A stretch of DNA of 46,498 bases from Lenisia limosa (GCA_001655205.1 LPNZ01003347.1:1-46498); one strand, 5' to 3'; shown: positions 7,420-20,600, counted from the first letter of the stretch. Translations and numbers: made by a program. Notes: generated by a model from the sequence alone, not told the origin.

Positions 7420-8370
7420 TGAAAAGTCATGGTAAGCTGTTGGTCGTTTGTATTTGTTTTGAGCGAGGATGAATTGTGGTTTTTCCGCACCATTCGCAGA
7501 CCCCCCTAAGTGGAAATTCGTTTCCGTGTGCAGGTTCTGCCTTCCTTAGTCTGAGCTCATGATTTCTTGATCCTTTACTTTTTGTCCTTACTTCACTAAT
7601 ATTTCTAGAACGTAAAAGCAGTGACTGAAGACGTAAATGTCCTGAAAACCTCTTTTATTGTAAGCAAAACGAGATGTTGAGTTAATTATTGAGCGAGGAT
7701 GAATTGTGGTTTTTCCGCACCATTCGCAGACCCCCCTAAGTGGAAATTCGTTTCCGTGTGCAGGTTCTGCCTTCCTTAGTCTGAGCTCATTTGCTTTTAT
7801 GACCTTTTCTCTTTTCTTATGGCTTCTCACCTTATAGCTTTCAACTAGAAGTACCTGGTAATCAGCCCTCAAGCGACGGCATTGAAGCTTTTCAGGTATT
7901 CTTGGCTTCTCTTATGAGCCAAATTTTCTTTTATGAAGATAAACAACCCGCAGCATGATATCTATGATTGCGCACACAACCAAGATCTCTGAAAATTATC
8001 CATCCTTTTCCTTTCTCTCCTTGTGATCAAACACTCATTGTTTTAGGCTTCAGCCAAAATGCAAATGTCAAAACGCACAACACACTTTTGAGGTTAGTTT
8101 ATTACCATTCTGCAAACCCATTTTTGCCGTATGTTGAGCTCTTTTTGCATGAGACTTTCATGATTGCTAAAGTAATTAACTTTCGTTCTACTGAAGGAAA
8201 CAATTGGTCTTGATACTCCAATATCTATTCTTTGGTCTCACCCTCCAGGTTGCTCCGCATTTAGCACCTGTCGTCCTAGTTTGGACCATTCGTTTCAATA
8301 GATTTCTTTTAGTTATTTCTTTTGGAATTGTATTGGTTTGATTATCTGTAATGTTTTCCATTTCCTCCAT
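7420..8370 (-). pseudogene. Degenerate ORF remnant, possibly Mutator/FAR1-like transposon-derived
   Basis: MEEMENIT...RTTGAKCGATWRVRPKNRYWSIK, then a shifted frame with VNYFSNHE (loosely FAR1/WRKY-like C..W..H), and a C-terminal CEWCGKTTIHPRS zinc-knuckle-like motif present twice. Stops and frameshifts lie between the pieces, and no DDE core is seen. Confidence 0.25.
7459..7790. repeat. Perfect ~102-bp direct repeat (7459-7560 and 7689-7790)
   Basis: TTGAGCGAGGATGAATTGTGG...CTGAGCTCAT occurs twice with a period of 230 bp. Confidence 0.95.
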
Positions 8371-8876: not shown

Positions 8877-11800
8877 TCAAGTCGACGGCTTCGATAGCTG
8901 ATATGAAGGGTTGTCCTTGGCAAGAGCATCCATCACCTTGAAAGTGAAAACGGTTTGGGATCAACTATTCCCCGCGCCTTCACACCTCTATGAGCTGAGG
9001 GAACGTGAAAGACTCCTTCTGAATGTCCGGGGCCTCCAAAAACGCCAAGAGATGGAATTGGAAACAGAAAGACGGCTAAAGAGAATGGGGAAATGAGAAA
9101 CACAATCAAGTATTATTAAAGTCAACCAGAGACGCATCCCATCATGGTGATGCGGACCCCCACCTGAGGCGCAAGGTCGGACAGAATTACTGTGATTTGC
9201 TCTCTTGCCTGCAATTATAAGATCAATAATGGAGTGTGCATAGAAATGCAGAGTAACCATTGCTATCCAGACACACCTCAGTAAGTTGATCCATAGTAAC
9301 AATTGGGGGTCGTCTGCTCAATTCTGAAGTGGACTGGCCCTTTTTGGTAAGTGAAAGCTGAAACGTGCCCCTTGATCTTTGTTAATATTATCAGTTTACA
9401 ACTCAATGCCTTCCAAAAGACCGCCCACCATCATGATGTTGACGGCCAATTTGACCCGGCCCGGAGCCTCGGAAATCAGGGCCCGACTATCTGAAGAGGA
9501 CAACGGCGGCGGTAGTGGCCTATTATTGACTGGGGGGTTATGGGAATTATAAAACCTCTTTGCCAAAGCAAGTCAATTCTTCTCCACAATTTCTCTGTTC
9601 GTACCCCCAAGACCAAAGACGTGTGACCCACCTGCTGAGCGGACCAAAGCCGAAACGGCTTTCAGTCCCCTCTTGACAACTAGGGGCAGACCCCCGGGGG
9701 CAAGGCCAAAGGAACCCGGGTCCTCAATAATGGGCAGGGCTATTCGGCTGAAAAGTAGTCGTGACGTCACTGAATAATAACGTAACGAGGGCTTTTCTTA
9801 ATATTGAAAAAAGAACATAATAGTGGAAAGAACGCTGATTTTGGAATTAGCATGGAGACGATTAGGATAGACCAAACCTTCAGGAGTACTGGAAGGGAAT
9901 CTTGCGTTTTCATCGTTGTTTACTTGCACTGCCAAAGAAAAGATCGGTCTACAGAAGGTGAGAAACTGGATCATAGAAAATACTATTATGCTAAGTTCTT
10001 AAATTAATCCCACCAAAGAGCATGAAACCCCTCTCTTATATCCACCCACTCCGGCAGCAGGGGGATGGCTGAGCAAACATCGTCAATGACCACTGACGCT
10101 AGGCTGCGGGATGAAACGATATCGAAATGAGGGTTTCATAAACAAAACAGTTAAATAGAAGCATGAGGGTTTCATATGGTGGGGGTAACAGTACACGCAG
10201 CACGTGACCCACTTTGCATAGACCGAAGGATGGTGTCCTCCAGGCGGCGGCGGAGGCGGGTTCCCTGTTCGCCGTCCTGTACTCGGGATATAGGGCTTCG
10301 TGGGGGGGATAGAGAGGACCTGGGGAGAGTGAAATGCATCCGTGTTGTAAATCGCTATATTTCCTAGTGCTAAAGAACTATCGATGAAAGGGTACATGAG
10401 GCCACGGACCTTGACAATAGTGTCGAGAGTTGGTTCGAGAACCGTGCACCAGAACTCATGACAATGCATCATGGTGGCAGTTAGCACCAGGGTCGAGGCA
10501 AAGGATCCACTTTTGAACGCCTGGCGACTTAACGCTACAGCATCAGACAAGTTGAACAGCTGACAAGTTGAACAAGCAGTTATCAGACAATTTGAACACT
10601 NNNNNNNNNNNNNNNNNNNNNNNNNNNNNNNNNNNNNNNNNNNNNNNNNNNNNNNNNCCGCCGTCAGCAGCAGCCGACTCAAGTCCGCTATCTGGAGGGG
10701 TAATGCAAAGAAAGCCAATACTAGTGCCCCGGAAGAAGGGAGGATACCTGGTGTGGCTCACGTAATTTCTGTTCATATTGTGCTGTGCGGAAATATTTAC
10801 TTATGCATGTACAAAGTATAACATGAAATATATGATATGTATCAAAGCAACAAACACACTTGTCATCACCTGCCTCCCCCCCACCTTGTCACTATTTCCT
10901 CGGCTCAGCTCCACTCGAGCTAGAGCCTCACCGCCAGCGCCGCAATAAGAAAACAGCGCCTCGCCTGAAGGGTGAATGTGCTGATTACTTTTGATTGGTA
11001 TGTGAGTTGGAGATTATTAGACAAGAGGCCCACCGAGGGGGGTCATAACGGGGCTGCTCGGAGCAGTGTACATTTTGTCAGTGACATAAGCAGAAGGTCG
11101 TTTGGAGTGGAACGTCTGGGGGTTAGTCGAGTTTAGAGTGGTGTACATACAAAATCAAAAGATTGAAAGCGAGAACTAAGATAAAGAGAATTTGACCAAT
11201 ATGAGCTTAGCGAGACAGCATACCTGGTTGGAAACGGCCTGCAAAATTCCGGTGAAAATCGTTTCTCGTGCGTCTATTTCTCGAACCTGATGAGTGAGAA
11301 TCCACATTTATCACCAAAATACGTATTATTTGTGCCTTTCTGGATGTGATAATTTGCTGTCTACCAAAACACTCTCAGCTGTATAACACNNNNNNNNNNN
11401 NNNNNNNNNNNNNNNNNNNNNNNNNNNNNNNNNNNNNNNNNNNNNNNNNNNNNNNNNNNNNNNNNNNNNNNNNNNNNNNNNNNNNNNNACATGGAGGGCT
11501 GCAATAACCTGGAAAGTTAACACCGGAACCCCTCGCAATAAGTAAAAATGTTGTAATTCACAAATGCACAAATGCACAAATGCGAACACTTACTGCTGTA
11601 TTAAAAAACAATAAAAAAAAAACAGGAAGTCCACCCAGCCCACTTCCGCATTAGAAGGTATCAGAGTCTCAACCGGGAGATCCAGGGGCGACGTAGAGGA
11701 TATCTCCTGTGGGGGGGGGGAGTAAAATGGAGATTTAAGAAACACAAAGCCCAAAATCAACTCTGTTGGCTGACAACACACGAGGGTTGATAACAACAAA

Positions 11801-14800
11801 ANNNNNNNNNNNNNNNNNNNNNNNNNNNNNNNNNNNNNNNNNNNNNNNNNNNNNNNNNNNNNNNNNNNNNNNNNNNNNNNNNNNNNNNNNNNNNNNNNNN
11901 NNNNNNNNNNNNNNNATACGCTTCAGATTATGCTCAACTCTCACCACCAACATTGCAGTATAACTTGACGTTGGACTGAAGAGACTTTGCCAATGCTTCA
12001 AGTGCCTCATTATCGTTGGTGTTACCTAGGGGGTGAAGACTGCAACTGATACACTCGATATCTCGATATATTCGAAGCTGTACTGGTCCAAATTGGAGTG
12101 TAGGAAGCAAAGCCAGGTATTTGAGAGTAACTTTCGTTCTTGTGATTAATATGTATCTTGATCTTGACAACAAAGAGGCAAAGAACCCCTCACCCGCACA
12201 GCCGACGACAGAGGAGGCAAGGAGTTGGCACGCAGTCTGCTGGGCTTGGTCTAGCGCCTTACTGGAGACCATTGGAAGGGGTGCAAGCGAAGGAGCTAAG
12301 GTGTTATTCGGTTCTTCCATGGCAATTGCCCACCTTTGAGGCTCTCCGGGTAAAGTCCATTCTGGTCTGGGTTGGACATTGCCGACGCATACACCCGGCC
12401 GAATGTCAGTGAAACCTGTACCGTGAGTTCACTTATTCCAACCCCCCATGATCCAGAAAACTCACAATATTCCCAACGGGCGACACTCTTGGCCACTTGT
12501 CGGCAATGGCGTGTTTGAGGCCGGCGGCAGCCGCTTGGAGGGGCCATGGGCAGCGGGTCGGATTGTTGACAACTGTCCGAATGGCATCGGATACGGCTTC
12601 ATGAAGGAGATCGTCCGAAGTGTACGGCAGGTCTGGGAGGTTATACCCGGTCGGCTTGGATCCATGATCACGCGAGTCAGTAGAGTAACAGCATGATTAG
12701 GTGGGAGCACGCACAAACTCAGCCAAATCATGAACTTGAAGCTCTCTATGACAAAGACACTTTTCTTTCCAAGCCCCCACCCCCACTTCTAGTGACGCCG
12801 GTCCCATCAATATCTGAGAGGGCTTCGGCGTTATCAAATACATACTCCATGGTAGGTGCCAACATCTGATAGGGGGTGAAAAGGAACTTTTAACCTTCAG
12901 TGCAGCTTGTCACATATTACTGAAACACCATGTATTTGTGTGTGTGCGTGTGAACTTCCATTTAATTGAAGACTCAGACATATCCCACCTCTTTCAAGTG
13001 TTCCATCAGCACGGGGGCAAGAACACTGTGTAAGACGTGCGCGGCGGCCGAGGGTCCCGCTAAAGCTAAACCTGGGGGGGGGGGGGNNNNNNNNNNNNNN
13101 NNNNNNNNNNNNNNNNNNNNNNNNNNNNNNNNNNNNNNNNNNNNNNNNNAAAAATATTGAAGTTAACCCTGACCAGTTGTTTTCAGAATATTAACCACAC
13201 GTATTGCACGCCAATATCCAACCTGGGGAGGGAGAGGTGCAAGCCTCATCATAAATGGCCGTCCTGACAAGATGCGGCGCCATATCTCGATACGCAAACA
13301 GCACCGCCAACGACGCCGGCACCAAGGCTTCAGATGACGTCATCAGAATACCGCGAGCAACCACCTGGGTGATGAATACATCAGACTATCTACTCAACAT
13401 CCCGCACCACCCAACATCCCCGCACCAATGGTCTCGCGTCCGGGGGCCCGGCGTTGGTCTCGACAAGGAGGTTGAGGAGTGCGTCTTGCCCGGGCGTGAG
13501 CACGAGCGCGCTGTCCTGAGCCAACTCCGAGAGAGACAATCCACCACCTTGGCGGTGAGTGTTTGCAGTGAAGTCTCTATTGAACCTAGGATGATACCAA
13601 AAGACACCCACTCTCCTCGTGATAACTGAACCCACCCACCCAGAACCAGCGTTCCACCTTCATCAGAAGAAAGCGACAATATTGAGTCGGATGCTTGGTC
13701 CAAACTAGCCTCAGCCCGAAGGGACTCGTCAAAGGTCTTGTCCTAATATGTTAAGTGTACTAAGGTCTGTCTTTTCCTAATATGGTAAGTGTCAAGTGCA
13801 TCTGCAATAGATACTCCCAAAAAAACAGTCCTGTTGTTTTCAATCTACTTCCCCTTCTCCAGCCGACCTGTAGACCCGTGTCATTGGGACCGAAGGAATG
13901 CAGCATGACACTTTTGAAGAGCTGCAGGAGTTAGACGGTAATTGACGTTCTTTAGCTCCTCACCCCCCACCTCCTCATCAACATGGTCCTTGGTGGCGTT
14001 CTTGTGGTACAAAAGACAGAACAGAGCCGTGGCGAGCAGCAGCGCCACAATCAACGCCGACATGAACCACAGAAACCAGGCTGGGAGGGGGTCTGCCGAG
14101 TCTGTGGCCGGGTAGCACAAGTCAAACGTCTCTCGATCTGAGGCATGAGTGTGTACCACATACAAGAAAGAGTCACATGACTAACCTTTTTCAGGAGTAC
14201 AGAGAATGGAGGGGGCGCAGAATGCCGAGGCTTCGTCCACTGTACTTGTGCACCAGGAGCAGTTGTTGAATGCTGGGGGTAAGGGATATCAAAAGAAGTG
14301 AAAGTGCTGAAGCAGAACAACTATGTATGGACTATGAATGCACTATGAATGCACTATATATGTACTATATTTGTACTATGAATGTACTAAGTATGTATAC
14401 ATACAATGTACATACAACGTATACATAATTTGTACATACAATATATATGTACATACAATGTATGGGTTGGGTCCATCGAATTTATGAGAAACAGCTCAAC
14501 AAAGAAAGCCCCCCCACCGCTTCTTGTCGATTCGGAGCAGCTGACACAATCCGCAAAAGAGCCACATGCCTGTTCAAGAAGCGTGTAGTCTGAAGAAATA
14601 AAATGTCTCGGGGAGGGGCGAAGATTTCATCAAACTGATTCGCAAAACAAAGCCAGCCAGTTGACCACACTACAACGCATTTAAGAGCAAAAAAGCAAGA
14701 CAACACACACCCACCTGGTTCACAAGTGGCATCTCCAAAGCAAACTCCCTCACAATCCATTGAGGAGTTGTATGGCCGGCCTGGGGGGAGATAAGTTAAA

Positions 14801-17800
14801 GATCTCACTGCCTGACTTAACTACGAATGAGCTATGGTCACCCACACACCAAGCCTACTGTTGTCACCCATTAAGCACCCACCTGTAGTGCCGCCAGTAC
14901 ATTCATCACAATAGTCCACTAATGCGCTTCCGTGGCAATCCCCACTAAACAGTAATACATAAGTGGCAATCCCCACAAAACAGTAATACATAAGTGGCAA
15001 AAAGATAAGTAGGTTATTAGGCTCAAGCTCAAACACAAGAAATGTGCCTTTCTAAATAACAATTAACCAATATTGTACCCCCCAACTTGCAATCCATTGA
15101 GCGGTTTGAGAGGATGGTAGCGCCCGGGGTATAACAGTCGCCACACTCGTCAGGAACCTATTGAGTCATTTCACTACGTAGATTGCTACCAACTAAACAA
15201 CTCGACTACATATCATCATACATGTACATGTACATGTACGTGTATATGTTCGAAAGGAGAAATAAGTAAAGGGTATGAATTGCACCAACCTGGAGGCCAG
15301 GGCATCTGAACACACAGAAAGACGACATTGGGAGTACCAAGTTCGGACACATCGTGCTGTTTGCCTGCAAATAGTGATAACACATAAGCATTTCAATAAA
15401 CTGGGAACAATCAATTATCAATTAAAGCAACAATTACATATTATATGATATTATTCAAAAACTGCCCCCCTGCATACCTGATATTCAAAAACTGCCCCCC
15501 TGCATACCTGATATCCTGGGGTTGGTGCTGGGCTCTCCATGGCTCCTGAACAATGAGAAAACCAGATGGAAAACAGGCAAAAGCTGAAGTGGAGACATTC
15601 AACCTACCCAGTTTAGCGGTGTGGCACTCGGACAAGGCATGGCACCATGCACAGTGCACACTGGATGTGCATTCCCCACAACTGCCCAATGTGGAACAGT
15701 CCGGCGCTGGGGTGTGTGACATTCAAATCAAATGAGTACATCGCTATGATAAGTTCTCTATAATACGATGATTACCCCTATGTATTCCTTATACCCCCCC
15801 TCGCCCACGGCATTGATCGGAAGTTGGTATCCAATTGTAGTCCGGGCCGGAGCAAGTCGTATTGTGCACCGGTTGGCATGTTTCACTACTTTCACACCAC
15901 CCGCAGTAGGCATCTGGATCGTGAGATCAGTAGAGTGAAATGAAATGTGGGATTGTTTGGATTATTTGACAATAAAACGCATTTCCGAGAAAAAGGATGA
16001 ATGAAAAGAGGAAGAGAAGAGAATAATAGAAGGATTGCTAAATATCATTGGGTACTTACACTCACCATTGTTACAGTCAGCACAAGTGGACAGAGTTGAG
16101 CAGTCAGGGCAACGGGAATGGTACCAATAGTCTGGTTCTGTTGTGTGCAGGGGGCGCGAAGAACTGCCCCTGGAAGTGGTGAATGGACCATAGTATAATG
16201 CTGCTTACCTCAGACACAATGAAGCCAAGGGGTCCCAACCACAACGCCTGTCGTCAACACACGTGGCACACGCAACACTAAATCGGTCACAATCAAAACC
16301 ACACAAATTAGACAAGTTCTTGGAAATTTACCCACTTTTGTTCGCAAAGAGGACATGAAGAGGCGTCCCAGAAGGAGATTGGACAAGCGAGCGGCAGAAC
16401 TTCCGCATTAGGCAAGTGTGACGGATATGCTTCGGATGAGGACCCGGGTAAACAGGTCAGTGATGACTCACACCAGCCACACCCTGGTGAGTGAGAAGAA
16501 AGTTTGAAAATAATATTGATGATCCAAACATTATTCATACCAGGGCTTGTGTCACACTCAGAGCATGTAGTGAAATTACTACAGAGAGGACCTACAACAT
16601 CAAAGGGATAAATCATTACATCAAGAGTAGTATTATAACCCCCAGGTGTCCTCTATAACCACTCCCCCTACAGGTGTCCCCGTCAGTCAACAATCCGGCC
16701 GAACAAGCCGAACCGAACTGGGTAGAACCGTTTCCAAAAGTGCAAAACTGGCTACTTGGACACCAAGAACACCGCGGATCTGGGCGGTTACAAGGGTATC
16801 AAAACCCAAAGAGGAAGGTCGCAAATAGCCCACATACCCGCAACACAGTCACCACAATTAGCGCTGGCGCAAGAAGAGCACGAAGCGTAGAACCAAACAA
16901 GAGGGTCGACAGAGGAATGATAGGCCCCGGCAGCCGTGCCCCTAAAGTGTAATTTATCATCGCTATCACATCTTAGCCCACCTTAAGCACGTGCCTCCTC
17001 CGGCGTCCCATCCACATCGCTCATCTGAGGAACACTCTGAGCAGGCCGTATACACCCCACATGTGAAACAGGTGCTATTGTCCCAAGCCAGGGCTGGGCA
17101 TTCACGGGGCGTATAAGGCTCAGAGCGGCCTGATTGGTTAATAATCCCTCATGAACCATTGTTTTGCGAACGACGTTTCTTGGTTTCAAATCAACACCTC
17201 TTGCAAATGGCTTACAAAACATTAGAAGGTGAAAAACGAACAAATGATATCATATCATATACTATAGGTAATAGTCGTAGGTCTTCAAAAAACACTTTTG
17301 TTGAGAAATCCTTTATTGTTATCCATTTCACAGGTTCAACGATATGCCATACCCGGTAAGCACTGCTGTGAGGAATCGCACCATCCACACCCGTAGGTCT
17401 CTGAACACTCCGAACAACTGCTAAGGGAGGGGCAATCCAAACCTACAAACCATGAGGCTATTGAGAAATATGAAAGAATCTATGTGAAATGAGAAATGAA
17501 AGCTCAGAAGATTCAAAAACACTTTCAAGAATGAAGATGCTTGCTGAAGACAGCATACACTGGTTATTTTCAAAGGTGTAGTCCAAACATGGCGTCACGT
17601 AAGGCTCAGTGGCGTCTCCGCCAACACACGACGCAGACGACGCGCACCATCCGCAGAGGGGGTCTGTGGGATGATAATGTGTCATCAATCCAAGATATCA
17701 ACTCTACTGAAACCACCAAATGTACTTTGAGGGTTGTAAAAAGTGACTGGTTTTTGCAACAGGCACTGTTATGGATAATTAAACAATAAAAACAGACCAA

Positions 17801-20600
17801 TATCAGCGCCACTAACCCATGCCACAAGCCGTGCATTCTGAATGAGCGTTACAAATGGGGCATTCATTGAAGGCCCACGCTTCCGCCCTTAAACGGTCAA
17901 GTGAAAATGACGAGTTTTACAGAGTAACATTACGGGGGTACAATCGTCTGTACACCAAACAGTGAGCACCATCCCTCATACACGCATTGAGACGTTGTGA
18001 GGTCCACTTTGGTTTGTTCCCAAGGGGCAGAACTGAAGGACGTTACTGTGTACGTTTCAGCTGAGGGTGAAGCATTCTGGGGGGTGAGGATGGTAAGGCA
18101 GGATTGCTTAATTAGCTGTAAAAGGCCAAGTCTATGTTGCAAAACACCGCAGCGAGGGAAGAAAGGCATACCAAACAAAGCTGCGAGAGAGAGCACCAGC
18201 CACAACCGGTGGCAGCGGCGCACTGGTCACATTCAGTTAATTCGCTGCAGTCACTCCCTAAAGGATTAGGGTTTGGAACATCAACAATTCCCTTGAACCA
18301 AAGAATCTCATACTCCACGACTTTACCAATCTCTGAAAAGCCTACCAGAGCTACGAAGAGTGGACGAAATATTCGAATCAGCAACAGCCACAGTCAACGA
18401 CTCAACCACAATGAAAGCTGTCGTGGTTGACGGCAGGGCAAATTGAACTGAGGAATAAGACCGCAATGAGCAATATGACAATGTGGGCTGCATTTACATG
18501 TAAAGTAACTTACCAGCACTTGATGCGTTTGCTGACACTGAAAGAACATGGGGAGTGTCACATCCAAAAACGACTGAGGTCTAAAACTGTCAGACCAAAA
18601 ATACCGATAACAATCAAAAACGCAACGGACTTTTAGAAACATAGGAAAATAGGTCCTGTACCAAACGAATAAACAATATCGGCATGGTCTAAAAACGTAT
18701 CTAATATGAAAACAGAGCCGTTCGCACCTCAACGGAGCCGCTGACAAGGCTGGCCCCGGCCTGTGGTACACAAGGCAGTGTGATGGCTTGAAGATTCGAC
18801 ACCAGGGGGGAGTCCTGCGACGTAAATGAGAATGGATTGAAAACGACAAAAACCAAGATATAAACTCCTTTGAATTCGAACACGAGTGTACATTATGCCC
18901 AGTTACCCCCACAGTTGCAAAGGTGAGAGCATCTATAGTTGCAATACTCCAGGTTCCTGGGTAGTAAGTCTATAGTTACAATACTCCAGGTTCCTGGGGG
19001 GTGAGTCTATAGTTGCAATACTCCAGGTTCCTGGGGGTGAGTCTTTTCTTTGGGTACTGTTGGGGTGAATTGCTCTTCAGTCCTTCCCACCAGTTGTTTC
19101 CTCTTTAGCCGTGATTATGACGGAAGATGGACTTGTGAGAGCCAAAAACTTCAGAGAATGATCAGCCACCACCTTGAGAATCAGAAACAGCTTGACATGT
19201 CCTTAAAACTATACATGTGACAAACACCCACTCTGTAGGATGTGAATGAAGAACCTCCATTGAAGAAGGTTGTCAAATCAAACTGGGAAGTGAGAAGAAT
19301 CTCAAAGGGACTTTCAACAAATACACCATCAGAGTGTTGATATAAAAACTAAACAAGTACATACTGGCAGAAACACATCTCATATTGTCGGTCAAAATTG
19401 ATGGAAAAGATGTAAAACAAAGTCAATTACGTCAATGATCAAACGGTAACAAACCTTCAGGAGAATACCACCGTTCACAGCCAAATGATAGCCAGTTGTG
19501 AACAAAATAGACCTATGCAGTGAGGTGGAGGGTTACGTAGAACTTTGGAAAATAGAATTGATGTAACAATTACATGTTTTCTCAAGAATCACCTAGTCTG
19601 TGGCACGTACACAGCGCTTTGAACAAAACCTGGACCAAGTTTATGCGTGGTTGAGATCTAAGTTGTTACTGCTGTAGTGATAATATATAAGGTAGGTAAA
19701 CTCCATACCTTAAACGTTGAAACGGGTATGACAACTATTTGGGCTTCTCGCTCGTTGGTGGCAAAAATAACTACACTAAGAGGATTAATACCTACAATTA
19801 TCTCGATTAGTGCGGTCATTCAGAGGAACTATCAAATTGTGAGGATATCCACCATATTGATTCCAACGCCTCCACATGATAAATCCCCAAGGTCAAGACT
19901 CACTTTTCAATTGGGTCGTAAACAGCTGTAGAGAACAAGGAAATGGAAACTGTTTCCAACTCAGTCTATACAGTCAAAAGATCAGAAGATCAGAAGAGGA
20001 AGCTAACAGCCCAAGCCCATCTGCAAAGCAACCTTCGTGAAGTAAAACACTTACCCTAAGCCAAAACAGTACAAAAGGCCCCTCACCGTTGCTCCTGACG
20101 CAAGTGAGGTTCGATATATTTTGCCTGGATAAACTGCAGAACTTGAAGCTAAAAAGTTATCATCTGTGCTACCCGTGAAACATAAGAGAATAGATGTTGA
20201 ATAAATATCTTACCGTAATAAGCAAAGCCATCACCAGGTGTAAGGAGGCATGCCAAGTCCTCAATACTTAGGTCAAATGAACCTGTAGGCATTAGGTTGT
20301 TTCAGATAACGCTTTACTATCACTCTTAAATCCCCTCACGAAGAACATTTAGTGTTGCATTGAAGATGTGGAGCGTAGTACCTCCTGATTCTGAAGTTTG
20401 AGATCAGCAGATTCGTTAACAAGGAAGTGCTATTCAAGGTTTGACGATGCCGAGACCAACCTGTCAGGGCCACCCCCAAATTCTGCTCGGCATCATAAGA
20501 GGCCTTGACAACGGCAGATCCCAGGCCAAGTGTCAAGTCATGTGTTGATGCAATACCATGACTGTCGCGTAAGAAGAAAGCATTAAATAAAAACAAAGTT
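8877..20600 (-). CDS. Single-pass receptor-like protein: beta-propeller, ~6 PSI repeats, Cys-rich DCxG repeats, TM helix and two tandem RasGAP-fold domains (5' end approximate)
   Basis: Blade motifs (DGFAYYG, YPGKIYRTSL, STAVYDPIE..VVIFATNEREAQIVVIPV, QSAVYVPQTRSILFTTG) at ~19.2-20.5 kb. PSI units (CSELTECDQCAAATGCGWC, DPLCGWCASSASC, DPRCSWCPSSQFC, CSNFTTCSECDTSPGCGWC, DAYCGWCESSETC, CSTLGSCGECTSSVHCAWC) at 15.5-18.3 kb. DCHGSALVDYCDEC and MDCEGVCFGDATC at 14.7-15.1 kb. TM WFLWFMSALIVALLLATALFCLLY at ~14.0 kb. RasGAP motifs at 13.4-11.7 kb and again at 10.7-9.6 kb. Stop TGA at 8877-8879. Confidence 0.85.

Follow-up and report, generated by a model that had tools for sequence, protein, structure and literature searches.

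A lysine in the arginine-finger column of an extremely divergent RasGAP-like domain in a Lenisia limosa receptor tail

An expressed protist receptor, which has PSI repeats and crosses the membrane once, carries two RasGAP-like domains in its cytoplasmic tail; the second of them (domain 2) has a lysine in the profile column where every reference RasGAP that we aligned (30/30) has the arginine finger. Profile comparisons support domain 2 as a RasGAP-homology domain, albeit an extremely divergent one, and we lean towards reading it as a pseudo-GAP. The DNA studied is a 46,498-nucleotide stretch from Lenisia limosa (GCA_001655205.1 LPNZ01003347.1:1-46498), called the window below; it is eukaryotic, and the gene lies on its minus strand. 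Read evidence came from one DNA run (X1) and one polyA RNA run (X2) aligned over 9000-14400, and both DNA assemblies and the RNA belong to a single study.

The receptor gene and the splice model of domain 2

An earlier sequence-only reading had placed a RasGAP domain with a lysine finger in this region, and every peptide that it quoted was found in the minus-strand translation where it had put it, including VIDDVCSAIPLLPE at ~10090-10050, PIFSLAVQVNNDENARFP at 9947-9894, LLFSRIALPIIEDPGSFGL at 9758-9702 and KRGLKAVSALVRS at 9674-9636 (all minus strand). A hydrophobic, transmembrane-like stretch near 14050 is followed by a long cytoplasmic tail, and many CGWC-type cysteine modules lie upstream on the same strand. 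Five minus-strand ORFs at 14800-18400 match Pfam PSI (PF01437), and two of these matches exceed the gathering cutoff, which confirms that an ectodomain of PSI repeats precedes the transmembrane helix. Elsewhere in the window, direct repeats of ~100 nt stand at 7454-7560 and 7689-7790, and minus-strand ORFs carry the same peptide twice there (ELRLRKAEPAHGNEFPLRGVCEWCGKTTIHPRS).

Table 1. Features of domain 2 in the window (L001, contig spanning the assembly gap)
Feature	Coordinates	Strand	Basis or content
193-nt GT..AG intron	10885 to 10691 junction	-	RNA contig rec8 of X2
Exon Eb, first 34 nt (IADLSRLLLTA...)	10658..10691	-	RNA contig rec8 of X2, continuing past 10658
Exon Eb, whole	L001:1069-1174, 106 nt	-	final 72 nt in gap (L001:1103-1174) encode ...AEGEGPGVAEQFIRAVCRREVLDS
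Assembly gap	10601..10657	.	57 N in window; true length 103 nt
97-nt intron, remainder	10535..10600	-	donor GTGGGG (in gap), end CTGTAG, AG at 10536-10535; rec8 resumes 10535/10534
Exon Ec	10213..10534	-	only open frame; RNA covers 10433-10535
Lys codon AAA, arginine-finger column	10512..10514	-	47-column gapless profile block, hmmsearch, hhalign diagonal
Exon Ed (N)LASVVIDDVCSAIPLLP(E)	10050..10103	-	phase-consistent junctions; unbroken alignment to RasGAP profile in joined model
Exon Ee PIFSLAVQVNNDENARFPSSTPE	9878..9948	-	'P..lR......FP' helix; joined-model profile alignment
Exon Ef (V)TSRLLFSRIALPIIEDPGSFGLAPGGLPLVVKRGLKAVSALVRSA	9632..9769	-	FLR-type motif F-S-R...P....P and alpha-7 helix
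102-nt GT..AG intron	9530..9631	-	RNA contig rec7 of X2 joins 9632 to 9529
Exon Eg (V)NNRPLPPPLSSSDSRALISEAPGRVKLAVNIMM	9429..9529	-	RNA contig rec7 covers 9428-9529, then 5 unplaced letters

Two junctions of the domain 2 model (Table 1) are proven by RNA. The RNA contig rec8 runs from at least 10885 into 10691-10658, continues through 71 letters unseen in the window and resumes at 10535-10433; its length is an exact match to the spliced length that the model predicts (20+106+102 = 228 nt). The unread part of exon Eb was recovered from DNA. Across the gap at 10601-10657 a DNA contig of run X1 has 103 nt, not 57, and an N-free ENA contig, L001, spans the gap as L001:1103-1205, with flanks 100% identical to the window; L001 was found via a word search with the finger exon, which led to a 100%-identical ORF (P0001) on it. 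Of the 103 nt in the gap, 72 complete exon Eb and the remaining 31 open the 97-nt intron. Coding sequence does not run straight through the gap, but after splicing the frame is unbroken and reads ...FIRAVCRREVLDS-A-LSRQAFKSGSFAS... (REVLDS-A-LSRQAFKSGS).

A second run of N, at 11390-11488, is also mis-sized and is really 60 nt long according to L001 and a DNA contig of X1. Beside a further gap (11802-11915), the segment 11715-11801 reaches, in the DNA run, a word depth of ~125,000 and is where dozens of contigs end; it is a dispersed repeat or homopolymer-rich element, and it breaks the assembly in the linker between the two RasGAP-like domains.

Exon Ec holds, in order, the finger block LSRQAFKSGSFASTLVLTATMMHCHEFWCTVLEPTLDTIV, YPFIDSSL and a Pro-rich insert (~10215-10319). 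The junctions Ec/Ed, Ed/Ee and Ee/Ef lie outside the RNA contigs and are inferred: between the RNA-covered parts a single junction set keeps the frame, with introns of 109, 101 and 108 nt whose donors (GTGGGTCAC, GTGGGTGG and GTTTGG, of GTGGGT/GTTTGG type) are similar to proven ones, the exon Ec donor (AA followed by GTGGGTCAC) resembling one proven by RNA. The joined product has no stops, and the splice model is supported because the hhalign alignment of that product to reference RasGAPs (97 columns) is unbroken across all three inferred junctions. Introns of the gene (9400-14200) are generally ~100 nt long (97, 109, 101, 108 and 102 nt), with two others of 193 and 48 nt, both RNA-proven; their ends are GT..AG and their donors GTGGGT/GTGGGG, and none belongs to a 22-nt GT..TG class.

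At the downstream side the RNA contig alignment stops at 9428, exactly at a GTGGGC donor-like site. Exon Eg probably ends at this donor and the gene probably continues below 9428, and an in-frame stop at 9396-9398 may be intronic. Since polyA RNA contigs show the gene to be transcribed and spliced, and since the domain 2 exons are open and in phase, this is not an obvious pseudogene.

RasGAP homology and the residue at the finger

Reference RasGAPs were collected from metagenome contigs, in which the FLR motif, quoted as FLRxxxPAxxxP (PMC12871552), was sought with a degenerate DNA pattern; this gave 31 long uninterrupted ORFs, and ten of the 31 were verified as PF00616, at 62-241 bits. Profiles were built from 30-31 of these ORFs, and an alignment for hhalign, A1, from 18 of them. 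Joined domain 2 scored 11.9 bits against the HMM of reference RasGAPs (P=5e-6), compared with 1.9 bits for the best of 2,000 shuffles, and hhalign aligned it with a probability of 94% (E=1.2e-7). Exon Ef alone matched A1 on the FLR region (hhalign probability 79%, E=1.6e-5). The order and spacing of motifs are also those of a RasGAP: E-V, 12 residues to the finger, the finger-loop helices, 'P..l(R)......FP', 11 residues, F-x-R...P....P and R-x-L.......N. The Pro-rich insert of exon Ec (~30 residues) falls where the RasGAP alignment is itself rich in insertions, a variable loop. In the profile alignment of the joined model exons Ed, Ee and Ef are all aligned.

The resemblance exceeds chance at the profile level, but not for single exons against Pfam or the PDB. 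Ten exon-sized ORFs from both domains gave no RasGAP match in Pfam at E<=10. A phmmer search of the PDB found no RasGAP with the finger exon and nothing with the domain 1 exon X4; with the ORF around Ef it returned NF1 189-235 at E=1.8, a chance-level match equalled or bettered by unrelated ones, and this NF1 match was gone when the exact Ef exon was used. Matches in an ESM Atlas feature search were at chance level only. Exons Ec and Eb alone gave no significant hhalign match to the RasGAP alignment, a pairwise local alignment of domain 1 with domain 2 was not significant (z=0.75), and when the window was scanned in six frames the short FLR and alpha-7 blocks were not unique.

The position of the lysine was established with a profile of RasGAPs that had been fetched independently and verified by Pfam. 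Over a gapless 47-column finger block, the register that puts Lys in the finger column scored +17.8 bits, against −10.8 bits for the next-best register and 14.4 bits for the best of 2,000 shuffles (0/2000 reach 17.8). With gaps allowed, hmmsearch again set the lysine under the R of LfRaNs, in an unchanged register, and the non-significant hhalign match of exon Ec follows a diagonal that also puts it on the finger Arg. A six-frame scan of the window with the 40 finger columns lying wholly inside Ec gave 92,758 placements, of which 10413-10532(-) scored best, at 16.5 bits vs 8.5 for the runner-up. An arginine four residues upstream was considered as the finger and ruled out, its register scoring −11.5 bits over the 47-column block. 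These results uphold both the lysine finger and the ungapped alignment over the finger region that the sequence-only reading had proposed. That reading had also left room for a profile alignment that would put an arginine at the finger; the alignment puts the lysine there, and no other register works. The codon (10514-10512) lies within the 228-nt RNA contig, and no DNA or RNA contig has a differing letter.

Domain 1 was modelled in the same way as domain 2, and its model requires introns of 50 and 38 nt. In the joined model it scores 9.6 bits against the RasGAP HMM, and with an alanine in the finger column its finger block reaches +12.3 bits (3/2,000 shuffles reach this). Both repeats in the tail are complete, with finger block, P..FP and F-x-R all present, and they differ at the finger column (Ala in domain 1, Lys in domain 2), as had been suggested from sequence. 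In each repeat an intron falls at an Asn codon shortly past the variable loop, at 12632/12787 in domain 1 (phase 1) and at 10103/10213 in domain 2 (phase 2).

Catalysis, Ras binding and competing readings

Beyond the finger, domain 2 is a mixture of kept and altered RasGAP positions. It keeps the Pro of 'P..lR' (30/30 references), the 'RFP' turn, the F and R of FLR and both following prolines; R236, L238 and N250 (p120 N942) are kept as well. Its FLR-type segment, F-S-R-I-A-L-P-I-I-E-D-P, has the Arg (codon 9746-9744) and both Pro correctly spaced, and the FLR motif with its second arginine (p120 R903) is therefore present; within FLRxxxPAxxxP, Ala is replaced by Ile and Leu (Leu902, 30/30 references) by Ser. 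The FRxN Asn (29/30 references) is Gly and the Arg of 'P..lR' (27/30) is Phe. Of the alpha-7 Ras-contact set K935, Q938 and N942, two of three are changed: the Lys 32 residues past the FLR Arg (p120 K935 / NF1 K1423; 29/30) is Ala (9650-9648), the Gln at +35 (Q938; 30/30) is Arg (9641-9639), and the N942 column (N in 28/30) has Asn, the first of exon Eg (9527-9525).

Because the finger and several Ras-contact residues are lost while fold-shaping residues are kept, a pseudo-GAP is the most likely reading. The residues expected to shape the fold and retained in domain 2 are the finger-loop helices, the Pro of 'P..lR', 'RFP', F-x-R...P....P, R-x-L and Asn942; those that would serve chemistry or Ras contact and are replaced are the finger Arg, the FRxN Asn, Leu902, K935/K1423 and Q938. 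Judged from this pattern, domain 2 is somewhat more probably than otherwise catalytically dead or nearly dead, surviving in the receptor tail as a module with a structural role or one in protein interaction. No RasGAP-family member is known to use a lysine as its finger. Kinetics specific to an Arg-to-Lys change at the RasGAP finger are reportedly given by Ahmadian et al. (1997); the literature that we searched held no passage on them that could be cited. GAP activity depends on the finger Arg (PMC4374526), and the NF1 R1276P variant has ~1000-fold lower activity (PMC13042986); from this published work on the NF1/p120GAP finger, catalysis by domain 2 would be expected to be lost. Canonical Ras binding would be weakened as well, and the domain may act as a scaffold in the receptor tail. 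The IQGAP GRD, a RasGAP fold whose GAP function is gone, offers a comparable case. The retained FLR arginine, which positions the finger loop, could mean that the loop still matters.

It is unlikely that the two finger-less domains hold or sequester GTP-loaded Ras- or Rap-like proteins at the receptor without hydrolysing the nucleotide. Such binding has precedent, as Ras binding survives in NF1 R1276P although catalysis is lost (PMC13042986) and R1276A/Q/N lose at most three-fold in affinity, according to a passage of PMC11751910 that cites Ahmadian 1997; the columns of the FLR Arg, P215, P220, R236 and N250 are, moreover, kept in domain 2. Against this, the lysine that contacts switch I is Ala, Q938 is Arg, and Leu902 and the FRxN Asn are altered. 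K1423 is essential for GAP activity and contacts Ras at the interface (PMC4374526, PMC11751910), its partner being Asp38 in switch I, and Ras is not bound by IQGAPs, in which comparable changes are present (PMC12871552). Since the K935/K1423-type lysine is missing, and Q938 and the FRxN Asn are changed, canonical Ras binding is doubtful, and the GTPase-sequestering tail proposed in the sequence-only reading is left unsupported. An active but non-canonical GAP, in which hydrolysis is stimulated, perhaps on a non-Ras GTPase, by the lysine or a residue from elsewhere, strikes us as very unlikely: in 141 structures of P-loop NTPases the stimulator is indeed a lysine finger (bioRxiv 10.1101/2022.06.23.497298), the RasGAP fold of plexins is capable of non-canonical catalysis on Rap (PMC3787391) and the arginine that stabilises the finger loop is retained, but Lys scores −0.8 bits in the finger column vs +3.9 for the Arg found throughout the references, and several further contact residues are lost.

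Harder still to credit is that the change is recent or private, with a lysine that might be specific to the strain, or that the gene copy is decaying. The codon is a single transition from Arg (AAA from AGA), both DNA assemblies and the RNA stem from one study, and neither orthologues nor paralogues were found: apart from ORF P0001 of the organism itself, a word-index search with the finger exon yielded nothing, a scan of metagenome contigs for relatives of this exon returned nothing, and an exhaustive HMMER search with it against 1.84 billion representatives gave only P0001 and P0002, and no orthologue. P0002, a bacterial PKD-repeat protein, was rejected as a chance match whose score comes from eight copies of one weak 40-residue match. 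On the other side, polyA RNA shows correct splicing of intact exons, the contigs offer no alternative letter, and both repeats depart from the references at many other invariant columns, a pattern that a long-standing release from catalytic constraint fits better than one recent mutation. Least credible of all, and already largely refuted, is a chance resemblance in a region that is no RasGAP homologue; the failures of single exons in Pfam and the PDB, the chance-level NF1 match, the insignificant pairwise alignment of the two domains and the FLR and alpha-7 blocks that are not unique in the window speak for it, but the profile matches are collinear, correctly spaced and far above shuffles.

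Relation to known RasGAP-fold proteins

Domain 2 shares its motif order and spacing with canonical RasGAPs (PF00616: the NF1 GRD, p120GAP/RASA1 and the fungal Ira/GAP1-type), and the surrogate profile of Pfam-verified members matches it significantly. It differs from them in the finger Lys, the Gly of FRxN, the Ser for the FLR Leu, the Ala for K935/K1423 and the Arg for Q938, in its added Pro-rich insert of ~30 residues, in single exons too divergent for Pfam, and in being one of a tandem pair behind a transmembrane helix. The literature that we searched held no mention of tandem RasGAP domains.

Plexins are similar in that they, too, cross the membrane once, have PSI repeats in the ectodomain and bear a RasGAP-fold module in the tail (PMC6374515, PMC3787391). 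In plexins, however, a single GAP domain is split by an RBD, has both catalytic arginines and is the best-conserved part of the protein (PMC6374515, PMC8011033, PMC3787391), whereas here there are two complete repeats, both without the finger Arg and both extremely divergent. A plexin-type single split GAP was rejected, as each repeat carries the full set of motifs. The IQGAP GRD is likewise a RasGAP fold without an arginine finger or GAP activity that serves as a binding or scaffold module (PMC12871552), inactivity in domain 2 being presumed. IQGAPs have Thr at the finger and YYR, and neither hydrolyse nor bind Ras (PMC12871552); domain 2 has Lys and F-S-R instead, is membrane-anchored and is without the CH, IQ and WW context domains. 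Having neither Thr at the finger nor YYR, it was rejected as an IQGAP-type GRD.

A pseudo-GAP is a known kind of degenerate domain, and dead RasGAP folds are already known from IQGAPs. The value of the present case is limited because the protein is an orphan, GTPase binding is only hypothetical and pseudo-GAPs as a class are well known. A bolder proposal, which we judge quite unlikely, is that the two finger-less RasGAP folds would form a ligand-controlled clamp for a GTP-bound small GTPase, or that the lysine would be a weaker finger giving a slow, tunable GAP. If true, each of these would give RasGAP-fold receptors a signalling design not described for them, and would do so outside the animals and choanoflagellates, the group in which plexins are thought to have originated. 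It is from plexins, considered an innovation of that group, that RasGAP folds coupled to receptors are known. A protist PSI-repeat receptor with tandem RasGAP-like domains bearing Ala and Lys at their fingers would represent an independent recruitment of the GAP fold to a receptor tail, followed by the stripping of its catalytic residues, and domain 2 would give the finger literature a natural Arg-to-Lys case.
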